Source: Parasitella parasitica NRRL 2501 (lineage: Eukaryota > Fungi > Mucoromycota). Taken from it: a stretch of DNA of 64,000 nucleotides. Below are positions 2,383-40,072 of this stretch, in pieces. The notes under the pieces were generated by a model. That model saw nothing but the letters and a program-made list of their open reading frames with translations. It made no database searches and was not told where the DNA came from. The position numbers and the translations under genes were made by a program. Location: positions 47,879 through 111,878 of the forward strand of contig MU619260.1 in the NCBI GenBank assembly GCA_025201805.1, written 5' to 3'. Each line of letters begins with the position of its first letter. Position 1 is the first letter of the stretch.

Positions 2383-4041
2383 TTAATAGTTTTTTTTATT
2401 GATAAAGTATAAAAAAGTACAGTTCTTCAGAAACATCTTTGAAGGAAAAAATCTTGGTCCTTATATACACGTTTCCAGGATAATTTCTATAATGAGTTCT
2501 AACCAATCCGTTATCAAAGAAGCACTGAGAATGTGGGGGATGATTTTTAAAAAAAACCATAACAGAAGATCTCAGCTTCAAAACTGTAACTCGACACACA
2601 GTGTTGGACAAAATGACTAAATGCAGTAATTTCCCACCATTCGAACCAATCATGGCATGTACTACAGCCGTATAAACCTTGTTTAGTTTGACAGGCTTTG
2701 AAATATTTAGTAATAAAAGTCATTCATATCTCATCTCAAAGATAAAAAAAAAAAATTGATCTCGTTACATGTATAGATTAGTTTATCTTGTTTCTATGAC
2801 ATCTAAATATATAGATAAAACGTTCAAACTACATAATCTTGCATGTCGAGCAATAAACATCTAGAAAATCCTTTTTGTCCTTTTATGCGGTATATCTTTC
2901 GTGATTGGATAGATTTCGACTGGATAATCCATTTAACTACTGGGCGAACACAATTACAAGCATAAATATTGAGCGATTTATTTTCATGAACTTGTAACAG
3001 ATTTCCTGTCTCAATTACTACCTTGGATTCTAGTCTTTAGGTTTCTATCATGTATTGAACTAGAGTCATATTAGATCTCGAACGCCGCTCCAATTCCAAT
3101 GATGACTATAAAGGCTCCCAAATAAAACGAGCAATTTACATCATCTTTTTTTTTTTTTATAGTGTACATGCATATAAACAATAGTGTATATAAGCTTTTT
3201 GCATGTTTGGTTCATGGTATACTGTATGCATTTAAATTTACGTCCAAACACTGTTTCGAGTTACTCGGAAATGAAAAAATTTTCAAGTTTAATATTATTT
3301 GTAACAATGACTTTATTTTTAATGGAGATCAAAAATACATGCCACCTCAAAAATACCAGAATTCTTGAGATTCCAGTAGATACATATATCTACAGAATAA
3401 AGAGAATCATAAAAAAAGAAAATGTGTTCCCCTGGTTTGTTTTTGTTCTATATAAAAATTGCTAATGCTTATTCTTAATCTACAAGAAATGAAGAAAACA
3501 TTTCCTCGGGTGTGGGTGTGACCCCATGCTAAATCGTGTGAATTTAGTGTTACAAACAAAGCAAAACACCAAAATTTCATGACAGTGCAAACAATGTTGA
3601 AGGGCGGTTTATAAAGTTTTGGCAAGACATTTAGCAAAAGAGACGTGGAGAGCACGAGATACGGCTTAAATTACAAAGTGCGCTTTTACTATAATATGCA
3701 GAGAAGAGGGTGAGACTGAACAAGGAGCAAATATAACTTGTTGGATTAAACTAGGCTATCAATTACAAATATGGGACATGTATACAGAGAGAAAAGTATG
3801 ATTTATAGTCCAACAATTCGATGGTGATTTGCGAGAAAAACGTCTTGAAAGACTACTACTCATAGACGATTTATCGTTTGGATCACGGTCGATTGTTTAC
3901 GATCCAGCCATTTACGAAAACGAAATTAACACGAAACATTTTTAAGCAATAAAGATATCATTGCTACGTAAATTAATATTAGCGTTTTTAATTTCTAGCG
4001 TGGTATCTACATGGTGTAGGAAAATGATAATCCCGTATTTT

Positions 4042-37150: not shown

Positions 37151-37306
37151 ATGTAAAAAAAGACAACGAGATTGAACGACCAGTATCAAAATACAATACA
37201 TTCCCTTTTATGAACCTCTAAATGTTCAAAAAAATTATTCTGCCTCGTCTAAACCAATCCTTCGCATGCAGATAATGTCAAATGACAAACAAAGTATTAT
37301 AAATTA

Positions 37307-39272
37307 GAGCATCTCCAACAGCGATGCTAAACAAAAAGCCATTTAAAGCATCCCATATCCCTTTTTTTTTTTTTACAACCTGGAAATGTTTTGTCTGCTT
37401 TTTTTGGTAATTGTCTCTGCTTACTTACTGTTGCTTTGCTTTTTTGTCTCTGAAGCTCTTTGAATTACTCCCTTGGCTCTTGCATCCATTGTATTCTCTT
37501 TTACTATTTTACTCTTCTCTTTTCTTCTTTATGCAAAGTCGTTCTACTTTCAAACAGGAGCTGGTGCTCACTACTTTTATTCAGCCCACATTTATATATT
37601 TTATACTATGAACCTCACACTTCTAACATTAATATGAGCATTCAGGACAGAAATACTGGCCATTTTAGAAAATGTTAATAAAGTTTGTATAGATAGTTAA
37701 ACTTTATACACTATACCCTTTTTTTTTCGAGTATCCACTGTGTTGATCGTAATGCACTTTGAGATTTTGTATTGAGCCTAATTTTTCAAATTCAACATAA
37801 TACATCACTAAATGTTGTAAGTTCATCCCTTCTTTTTCTTTCCTGAATTTACTCCTCACACATATATGAAGCGTAAACTTAAAGACGATCCACCAGATAG
37901 GAAAGGAAAGAGAGCTATAAGAAGTAAATATCTAACACATACATTGTGAAAAGAATATATGTCTTACTATGTTTTAGGTGCAGATTTGAATCACCAAAAA
38001 AGAGGAGGCTGATTTGACAACACCAGGTATTCCCACCACCAACGATGCTTCGAGTTCAACAGCAAAGGCTTCTAGCTCAACAGAAAAGACTGCTAGCTCA
38101 TTTAATGAGATAGCTTCTTCTTCCAGCAAAACTCTTACTTTATCTAGGAAAGTCCAACAAAAAAAAGACAAAAAAGTTGATTTAGAGGAGTTCAAGAAAC
38201 AAACCAAATCCAACAAACCAATGCTGTGGCATTCATGTAAACAGACAGATCATGCGAGGTCTACCAGTAAACTCTGTCCACATCGAAAAGAAAAGAAGGT
38301 GGCTCAAGACAACGATGACGAAAAGACAGAAGCTTTCACCATCAAGTCTTCACTTGAAACCACATGCACAAATACAACATTCATGACATCAATTGACAAC
38401 TTGGTGGAGTACGCTACCAAAATTACCCATATAGGCTCATTGTTTGCAAACTTTATTATTCTGAAATGTGCAGATGCCAATGAAGATACGCCAATCATTA
38501 GTCAAGATTTTGTTTATGTTATATTTTCTACCTTAGCAGGTAATGGGAGTAGGGCTCCTGAGTTCATCCGTCAATATTTTGAAGAGTTTAAAAATGCGTG
38601 CGAGATTGACGAGCAAATTTTAAAATCATTGAAATCTATTGGTTATGCGACTATTCTTTCCATTTCTGCCAAGCAGTGTGAAACCCTTTTCCGAAATCAT
38701 CTTTGTGAAGACAACAACGAGAAACAACAATTCTTACTCCCGCCCTCCACCACTTGATGGATCAGTTAAGGCAAATAAAACCATCATTGCCTATGGAGAT
38801 GGAAGATTTTCACTTACCATGAGAGGCAAAAGATCTGGACCTACAAAGACTATCATAAAAGCCCTTCAAAAATGTAAAGAAAATCGCGGTGTTACAGTCC
38901 AAATGGTAGACGAATACCTCACCAGTCAAGTCTGCAACAACTGCAAAAAAAAAGAAATGTTGAAAACGTTGTGCAACGATCAGCAAAGCGAAGAGTACAT
39001 TCTATATTACAGTGTCAAGAAACCGCTTGTATTATTTTGGAATCGCGATATGATGGCTGCAAAACAACATCCTCAACATAATTTTACATGCAGCAAGAAA
39101 CAATGACGCTCGTCTTTCAGCGTTCTGAATCAAAAGAATAATTGCAAGCATTGTGTGTCATTGATATTACTCTTTGATACGCCATGGGTATTCGGTTTAT
39201 CCTATACACCATTACAGGTGATCATCCTCTCACCAATTTTCTTTTGGAAATTTTAGTAAAATTAGCATGCTC
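37307..39272 (+). mobile_element. Non-autonomous PIF/Harbinger-like element carrying a Fanzor gene
   Basis: TTA|GAGCATCTCCAACAGCGATGCTAAA at left and TTAGCATGCTC|TTA at right: GAGCAT termini and 3-bp TTA duplication (37304-37306, 39273-39275). Confidence 0.7.
37866..39128 (+). pseudogene. Fanzor1 (eukaryotic TnpB homologue), internally deleted and frameshifted
   Basis: IIAYGDGRF..MRGK, RuvC-II VDEYLTSQVCNNC, zinc finger completed in an alternative frame (KRRVHSILQCQETAC), RuvC-III WNRDMMAAK; N-terminal C..TDHARSTSKLCP knuckle; RuvC-I region absent. Confidence 0.88.
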
Positions 39273-39292
39273 TTAAGAAACCAAATAAAACT
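39129..39292 (+). ncRNA. Candidate Fanzor omega-RNA scaffold plus flank-derived guide
   Basis: Three consecutive hairpins between the Fanzor stop and the element end: TCAAAAGAATAAT/ATTACTCTTTGA, ATGGGTAT/ATACACCAT, GGTGA/TCACC; position matches known TnpB/Fanzor omega-RNAs. Confidence 0.55.
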
Positions 39293-39500: not shown

Positions 39501-40072
39501 ATGTCCAACACAGCTCTCCCCAAGGTTTTTTTCGATGTATCTGCTAATGGAGAACCTCTCGGTCGTATCGTCATGGAATTGAGATCCGATGTTGTCCCCA
39601 AGACTGCTGAGAACTTCCGTGCTCTCTGTACTGGTGAGAAGGGTTTTGGTTACGAGGGCTGTTCTTTCCACCGCGTTATCCCCGAATTTATGCTCCAAGG
39701 TGGTGATTTCACCAATAACAATGGCACTGGTGGCAAGTCTATCTATGGTGAAAAGTTCAAGGACGAGAACTTCACTCTCAAGCACACTGGTCCCGGTGAT
39801 CTCTCCATGGCCAACGCCGGTCCTAACACCAACGGTTCTCAATTCTTCATTACTACTATCAAAACCACCTGGTTAGATGGCAAGCACACTGTTTTCGGTA
39901 AGGTTACTGAAGGGTAAGTTATCTTTTTCATAGAACGCACCAAGTGGAAATTTATCCTAACGTATATATCCTGTGTTATAGCTTGGATATTGTCAAGAAA
40001 ATCGAAACTTTCGGCTCCGGTTCTGGTAAAACCACAAAGAAGATAGTCATTGATAAATGTGGTCAACTTTAA
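39501..40072 (+). CDS. CPR1: Cyclophilin A peptidyl-prolyl isomerase, 2 exons
   Basis: [66 protein letters not shown]; intron ~39914-39980. Confidence 0.97.

Follow-up and report, generated by a model that had tools for sequence, protein, structure and literature searches.

The element described here occupies positions 37307-39272 of a 64,000-nt stretch of the Parasitella parasitica NRRL 2501 genome (GenBank assembly GCA_025201805.1, contig MU619260.1), which we call the window in its entirety. Between two copies of the triplet TTA lie terminal inverted repeats, a 5′ non-coding part, broken coding sequence of a Fanzor1 nuclease, and a 3′ non-coding region that reaches the right end (Table 1). 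With a probability of roughly 80%, we read this unit as a dead, 1,966-bp deletion derivative of a ~3.65-kb non-autonomous DNA transposon that once bore one gene, a Fanzor1.

Ends and copies of the element

The 32.8-Mb genome (450 contigs) contains at least 28 elements of this family, with 57 ends. Searching the 1,966-bp unit against its own genome returned 60 matches, several of which span element positions 1 to 1961/1962, and both boundaries are therefore common to other copies. With up to 2 mismatches allowed, the genome contains 57 occurrences of the 22-nt terminal motif, compared with 0 of a reversed control. The family ends are of the GAGCATCTCCAACGGAGATGCT type. The pattern TWA+GAGCATCTCC, which joins the triplet TWA (TTA or TAA) to the outer 10 nt, has 50 occurrences, exclusively at family ends, versus 0-1 for the control.

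Aligning the ends of all copies revealed a true terminal inverted repeat of 24 bp (left, GAGCATCTCCAACGGAGATGCTAA; right, TTAGCATCTCCGTTGGAGATGCTC). This repeat is itself palindromic, AGCATCTCC-AAC-GGAGATGCT, with a 9-bp stem and a 3-nt loop. The window copy ends on the right in TTAGCATGCTC as opposed to the canonical TTAGCATCTCCGTTGGAGATGCTC, a loss of 13 nt. A preliminary description of this locus, made from its sequence, had placed the boundaries at TTA/GAGCAT (37304-37312) and ATGCTC/TTA (39267-39275) and had read the right end as the left end minus a 13-nt middle. The shared ends of other copies and the copy alignment bear out both points, and the 6-nt GAGCAT ends that it gave are only the outer part of the 24-bp palindromic form. 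Other copies neither differed in their boundaries nor lacked TWA flanks, an outcome that had been named in advance as counting against the proposal.

Taken by itself, the window copy could pass for a decayed host gene with chance terminal similarity and no mobile element at all, since its visible inverted repeat is just 6 bp. The census refutes this reading, with 57 ends and no fewer than 28 differently flanked elements against a control count of 0, and we regard the probability of such a gene as negligible.

Insertion duplicates a TWA triplet

TTA or TAA flanks every listed end of the family. We obtained 19 element pairs from flanks read at the loci and from paired end coordinates. The same triplet stood on both sides in direct orientation (TTA/TTA or TAA/TAA) in 15 of the 19, and at least this many identical flanks would arise with a binomial p of ~0.01 if the two sides were independent. 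We conclude that insertion creates a 3-bp TWA duplication. A 4-bp TTAA duplication was rejected because copies such as that in the window read ATTA versus TTAA, and a TA duplication was rejected because the right end is not abutted by TA.

Two observations weigh against this conclusion. In the remaining 4 of 19 pairs the two flanks differ, one being TAA and the other TTA. Furthermore, an empty site with a single TWA, which the preliminary description had suggested seeking in related strains, was not found in other samples, as a paralogue, or among matches to the loci compared. The left flank is unique, the flanks of more distant samples do not align, and the sole other sample covering the flanks, X6, carries the insertion, with contigs that cross both junctions without differences.

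The hairpin at each end, with its 9-bp stem and 3-nt loop, could instead indicate single-stranded movement by an HUH enzyme (IS200/IS605- or Helitron2-like), with TWA as a target motif. Helitron2 elements with hairpins at both ends are known to carry Fanzor1 (PMC3627910). However, the ends are true mutual inverted repeats over 24 bp, and direct identical triplets in 15 of 19 pairs are what a staggered DDE cut is expected to leave. We therefore consider movement by an HUH enzyme very improbable.

Coding remnants of a Fanzor1 nuclease

On sequence grounds, the coding remnants and the family are Fanzor1, because the family profile matches solved Fanzor1 structures ahead of Fanzor2, TnpB, and Cas12f. 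Coding pieces were searched one by one, with exons unjoined and frames unrepaired. In the window copy, IIAYGDGRF, VDEYLTSQVCNNC, and WNRDMMAAK lie in the open reading frame (ORF) 38639-39106, RRVHSILQCQETAC lies in the ORF 38971-39081, and ...AARNNDARLSAF closes at the TGA stop at 39126-39128, such that every peptide quoted in the preliminary description is present in its frame. The C-terminal piece of this copy matched Pfam PF07282 (Cas12f1-like TNB / OrfB zinc ribbon) with E = 1.8e-5 and 25.3 bits, just under the cut-off of 26.3 bits. The same piece in a sister long copy (L031), where it lies in one frame, scored 36.9 bits and exceeded the cut-off.

A phmmer search of the full library with the 185-aa C-terminal piece of the copy on contig C106 returned 372 proteins at E ≤ 0.001, many of them 600-860 aa long and containing PF07282. 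Aligning 22 homologues showed the conserved blocks IAFGDGxF, DEYLTSQxCxxC, HxVLxC..C, and WNRD. Against the PDB, the profile built from this alignment (A1) matched SpuFz1 (8GKH) at 2.1e-16, GtFz1 (9CER) at 7.4e-14, and PpFz1 (9CF0) at 2.9e-13, followed by mimivirus Fanzor2 L79 at 6.6e-10 and by TnpB and Cas12f at 3e-6 or weaker. The RuvC-I piece had no match in a single-sequence PDB search, and the profile search alone was informative. The earlier proposal of a Fanzor1/TnpB-type remnant inside an inverted-repeat transposon, to be checked against Fanzor/TnpB profiles, thus held: the sister copy exceeds the PF07282 cut-off and the family profile best matches Fanzor1 structures.

Bao and Jurka described the Fanzor1 motif as D-X(125-275)-[TS][TS]-X-X-C4 zinc finger-X(5-50)-RD (PMC3627910). 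Long copies of the family carry the series VWAVD(S/P)GIS ... LTSQVCNNC ... CQETAC ... WNRD, which agrees with this motif, and their RuvC-I-type motif reads QVWAVD(S/P)GIS. The window copy retains only TSQVCNNC / CQETAC / WNRD, distributed over three frames, and its RuvC-I Asp is deleted. The closest full-length homologue, P0009 (863 aa, GCA_041956525.1), aligns collinearly in five segments, and its locus is not within an element having the family ends.

Two more distant relatives, L067 (Logan SRR10989976) and L066 (JGI metagenome 3300048868), are related to the family at 74% DNA identity and 58% protein identity. L066 lacks the family ends, whereas the N-terminal exon of L067 is open over 305 aa and keeps its CX2CX4HX7C motif intact. 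The only relative of the N-terminal half detected outside the family is a fragment, P0151, which is 67% identical. The preliminary description had reported an N-terminal zinc knuckle. This motif is CX2CX4HX7C in sister copies and in L067, is degenerate in the window copy, which lost the first Cys (PMLWHSC), and matches no Pfam model.

Deletion and decay of the gene

Among the copies seen, only that at C70:62495-66149 (3,655 bp) spans the whole element. Aligned to this long copy, the window copy covers positions 1-89, 365-1670, and 3083-3638. It is missing 1,412 bp, with a 6-nt overlap at the junction, and this 1.41-kb deletion takes the second half of REC, WED, RuvC-I, and the linker. The N-terminal part has a frameshift in an A-run near 37996-38001 followed by an open frame at 38014-38757; other copies omit one base at 37996 or 37999. 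The window copy is dead, having lost RuvC-I, WED, and half of the right palindrome and having four frameshifts in its C-terminus. In this respect the preliminary description was correct, both in the deletion of RuvC-I and in the frameshifts, including that in the A-run at 38945-38946.

We presume that positions 37331-37865 represent the promoter and leader. RNA-like contigs are deepest over this part, where depth is summed over all copies. The gene appears to be split by introns, at least one of which looks canonical: ahead of its NVIYTDG block, the long copy contains a stretch reading GTAAGT...TACTAAT...TAG. Owing to such apparent introns, frame changes in the family are not damage in every case. 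Two findings weigh against the sense gene model that we propose for the 5′ half. The proposed sense intron at 37924-37977 (GTAAAT..TTTTAG) is not supported by RNA contigs, and splicing of the 5′ half in these contigs is antisense, not sense.

The full-span copy on C70 is also broken. One nucleotide is missing from its first exon, REC is frameshifted twice where the window copy is open, 43 nt are deleted ahead of KTIIAYG, and a zinc-ribbon Cys is changed to Ser. No intact family member was present among the copies seen in the assembly, parts of which, including other Fanzor loci, were available only as N. This counts against our reading, in which the nuclease activity, target-adjacent motif (TAM), and guide are consequently inferred. 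Loci on C104, C9, and C185 were considered as intact long Fanzor frames and rejected because they contain runs of N.

Table 1. Features of the element in the window. Private lesions were judged against the majority of copies in the same genome and in four other samples.
Feature	Position	Strand	Basis
Left target-site duplication, TTA	37304..37306	.	identical to 39273-39275
Left terminal inverted repeat, 24 bp, palindromic, GAGCATCTCCAACAGCGATGCTAA	37307..37330	+	2 mismatches against the family form
5′ non-coding part, with private indels at 37355-37365, 37400, and 37551	37331..37865	+	copy alignment
Putative exon 1, MKRKLKDDPPDRKGKRAIR, basic start resembling a nuclear localization signal	37866..37923	+	read from sequence; same start in relative L067
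N-terminal coding remnant: Ser-rich stretch, degenerate CCHC-like knuckle, first part of REC	37978..38709	+	ORFs, copy alignment
Private lesion: frameshift	A-run near 37996-38001		
Junction of the 1.41-kb internal deletion, 6-nt overlap; rest of REC, WED, RuvC-I, and linker gone	38704..38709	+	alignment to long copy
C-terminal Fanzor1 remnant: IAYGDGRF, DEYLTSQ (RuvC-II Glu), CNNC...CQETAC zinc ribbon, WNRD (RuvC-III), stop at 39126-39128	38710..39128	+	PF07282, PDB profile
Private lesion: 2 extra bases	38945-38946 (A-run)		
Private lesion: 2 bases missing	39035		
Private lesion: 1 extra base	39065		
Private lesion: 8 bases missing	39117		
3′ non-coding region, candidate omegaRNA scaffold; ~34 nt missing at 39220	39129..39261	+	conservation, predicted fold
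Private lesion: ~34 bases missing	39220		
Private lesion: 13 bases missing	right inverted repeat		
Remnant of right terminal inverted repeat, TTAGCATGCTC, lacking the middle 13 nt of the palindrome	39262..39272	+	alignment of copies
Right target-site duplication, TTA	39273..39275	.	contig of sample X6 crosses the junction with 0 differences

Size classes and subfamilies

The 1.41-kb deletion is common to five places with different flanks (the window, C147, C41, C4, and C231), which implies that the deleted form itself was mobilized. Further size classes comprise copies of ~1.5-1.6 kb (C86, C122, C97, and two on C50), copies of ~2.1 kb (C85 and C96), and a miniature class with ends 585-637 bp apart (C32, C37, C46, C112, and C116). 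Copies of the window's own subfamily are 92-96% identical to the window copy. Contig depths in another sample suggest copy numbers of ~40 for the 3′ end and ~10 for the N-terminal coding part. In two samples of other species (genomes of ~60 Mb), copies are ~95-96% identical (in sample X8, record 26 aligns to window positions 37407-39246, and one contig is 3,956 bp long); these copies carry 1,447 nt that are deleted in the window and are free of its private C-terminal indels.

Several loci depart from this pattern. A second subfamily (L011, L014, L027, and L028, on C2, C42, and C155) shares the inverted repeats, the first ~44 nt, and the 3′ half, with a different 5′ kilobase and a spacer before the right end that is 13 nt shorter. 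At C8:351939-362014, two family ends with matching TAA flanks lie 10 kb apart, which would make them a composite or else a single element containing large cargo or nested insertions. In another family copy (L032:1672-2544, on C2), a Tc1/mariner-like DDE transposase ORF interrupts the element behind the N-terminal exon, apparently as a nested insertion or because the copy is chimeric. NCBI lists two family pieces as Parasitella parasitica hypothetical proteins.

The 3′ non-coding region and transcripts

No part of the element is more conserved than the 140-190 nt from the stop codon to the right end, which are partly shared with the metagenomic relative L066, the protein of which is 58% identical. 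With the inverted-repeat hairpin included, the predicted fold of the canonical 3′ region has z = -4.3, a value matched by 0 of 200 shuffles. The omegaRNA scaffold of Fanzor1 has been described as running into the right transposon end (PMC10530073). By analogy, conservation and fold fit a putative omegaRNA scaffold that would likewise run into the right end of this element. In one stem, C70 carries a compensatory change and the relative has a different sequence that still pairs, but over the whole region covariation is thin, which counts against this interpretation. There was no Rfam match to the 3′ region.

Just ahead of the inverted repeat, the canonical 3′ region (window 39170-39265; alignment A2, columns 145-228) contains an intron-like stretch, GTGAGT ... 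TTAG, which RNA contigs keep unspliced. The RNA-like sample X7 has three joints with CT..AC ends, at 37656-37716, 37915-37967, and 38144-38218. These are GT-AG introns of an opposite-strand transcript through the 5′ half of the element. The antisense exons contain no ORF in the window copy, and for this reason we rejected a concealed Myb-like gene on the opposite strand.

Which transposon superfamily carried the gene

PIF/Harbinger elements are defined by a TWA duplication and by inverted repeats that are mostly shorter than 60 bp and begin with A or G, and they encode a DDE transposase and a Myb/SANT protein (PMC4482050). The present family has a 3-bp TWA duplication and a 24-bp inverted repeat beginning with G. 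From these two features, we consider a Harbinger assignment the best reading and a probable one. The genome contains seven loci above the cut-off for PF13359, the Harbinger transposase domain, one of which is an open frame of 358 aa. These loci weigh against the assignment, in that all of them lie away from the 57 ends and no terminal motif or convincing inverted repeats occur in the short flanks of up to 1.5 kb that were readable around them, in a genome parts of which were available only as N. The preliminary description had assigned the element to PIF/Harbinger and had proposed searching both ends genome-wide for full-length copies accompanied by transposase and Myb partners. The duplication and the short, G-starting repeat agree with that assignment, and the search did yield long copies with a RuvC-I motif. 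However, the full-span copy proved to be broken, and no Harbinger transposase or Myb partner with the family ends was found among the seven PF13359 loci.

This missing partner leaves room for the same dead Fanzor1 transposon to have been carried by another or undescribed DDE superfamily with 3-bp duplications (Zator-like or unclassified), where TWA would reflect an AT-rich target preference. Harbinger elements are not known to have palindromic inverted repeats, and we counted this in favor of such a carrier. Precedent also exists in MCi-5, one of ten Fanzor1 families described in Mucor circinelloides, the Harbinger transposase of which Bao and Jurka (2013) likewise could not tie to typical ends (PMC3627910). 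Nevertheless, TWA is strictly present at 50 of 50 listed ends, a published hallmark of PIF/Harbinger (PMC4482050), and the genome does hold Harbinger-type transposase genes. On balance, a carrier from outside PIF/Harbinger appears unlikely to us.

Under the Harbinger assignment, the element would have been mobilized in trans by a PIF/Harbinger-type DDE transposase able to recognize the inverted repeats. The Fanzor gene was probably dispensable for movement, given that deletion derivatives and miniatures of ~600 bp spread as well. An intact Fanzor with its omegaRNA would be expected to cut DNA beside a TWA-containing motif, guided by the sequence that lies past the right end. To judge from TnpB and characterized Fanzor1s, such cutting might help the element to persist or home.

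Relation to known elements and nucleases

The association of Fanzor with Harbinger is already known (PMC3627910), and a 2026 review names Harbinger among Fanzor carriers (PMC13565253). MCi-5 resembles the present family in being a Fanzor1 element of Mucorales tied to the Harbinger superfamily. It combines a Harbinger transposase with a putative 6-bp duplication and lacks clear inverted repeats, whereas the present family has a TWA duplication and inverted repeats and no transposase. The family thus places a Fanzor1 gene inside an element with the textbook PIF/Harbinger signature, a signature missing from MCi-5, the sole previous link to Harbinger. The range of transposon types known to have taken up Fanzor1 is thereby put on firmer ground, and the TAM is predicted to contain TWA. 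In its TWA duplication, short G-starting repeat, and many deleted and ~600-bp derivatives moved in trans, the family is similar to non-autonomous PIF/Harbinger elements of the Tourist/mPing type. Unlike these elements, it carries a nuclease gene and guide-RNA-like 3′ cargo, its repeat is palindromic, and no autonomous partner was identified.

Among characterized Fanzor1 nucleases, SpuFz1 and GtFz1 gave the best profile matches and share DPG... (RuvC-I), DEYxTSQxCxxC, and WNRD with the family. Identity to them is ~30% or less, and the N-terminal half of the present family has no detectable relatives beyond the 67%-identical fragment. The Fanzor1 of Parasitella parasitica itself, PpFz1 (PDB 9CF0-9CF3; Xu et al. 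2024), cuts DNA, has a 5′-ATN TAM, and has been solved by cryo-EM (PMC11423790). It belongs to the same class, with RuvC and a TNB zinc ribbon, and is reached by the family profile. It is nonetheless a member of another family: we rejected an identity with PpFz1 because a single-sequence search does not reach it and its published omegaRNA is without the terminal motif of the present element. PpFz1 is intact and active, whereas all copies of the present family that we saw are broken.

The preliminary description had suggested that intact copies could be a new programmable nuclease. This was overstated, given that none was seen in the assembly and that PpFz1 of the same species is already characterized. 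The window copy itself is of minor importance, being a pseudogene in a species whose Fanzor1 nucleases are known, abundant, and structurally solved. The Harbinger-type ends and the signs of cross-species spread are a modest addition.

Similarity to an element in Cokeromyces

We found a 1.13-kb internal fragment of the element in Cokeromyces recurvatus (GCA_025118155.1; L068:7918-9040) that is 88% identical to the Parasitella long copy. An open piece of 155 codons within it has 89.9% identity, with differences spread evenly across codon positions (14, 14, and 16), which looks like neutral decay. By comparison, the neighboring housekeeping genes on the same Cokeromyces contig, RRP5 and WD40, are only 66-71% identical to their Parasitella counterparts. 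Element identity far above that of host genes implies that the element copies separated long after the species, and these sequence comparisons point to transfer between Mucorales lineages.

Parasitella is a parasite that fuses with the cells of its hosts. It is conceivable, although we would stop just short of favoring it, that a Harbinger-type Fanzor1 family recently crossed species boundaries in Mucorales, possibly through this cell-fusion parasitism. The copies of ~95% identity in two further species belong to the same picture. If the family did cross in this way, it would lend concrete sequence support to the published speculation that Fanzor elements play a role in transposon-mediated gene transfer in this parasite-host system. 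The similarity between the Parasitella and Cokeromyces elements is in any case a testable lead for horizontal transposon transfer in a host-fusing fungus.

Other Fanzor1 loci and a neighboring gene

The genome contains other Fanzor1 families that are 22-46% identical in the RuvC-I piece, at C104:70573-70893, C9:391556-391846, C185:30090-30446, C25:22058-22420, and C158:36829-37158. Several of them consist in part of N. One other-family locus, L055, adjoins a Tc1/mariner-type transposase ORF.

Downstream of the element in the window, a highly expressed cyclophilin A-like gene occupies 39501-39917 and onward, starting 229 bp beyond the right end. PpFz1 binds cyclophilin via its FRI domain (PMC11423790). 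The adjacency of this gene to the element is most likely a coincidence.

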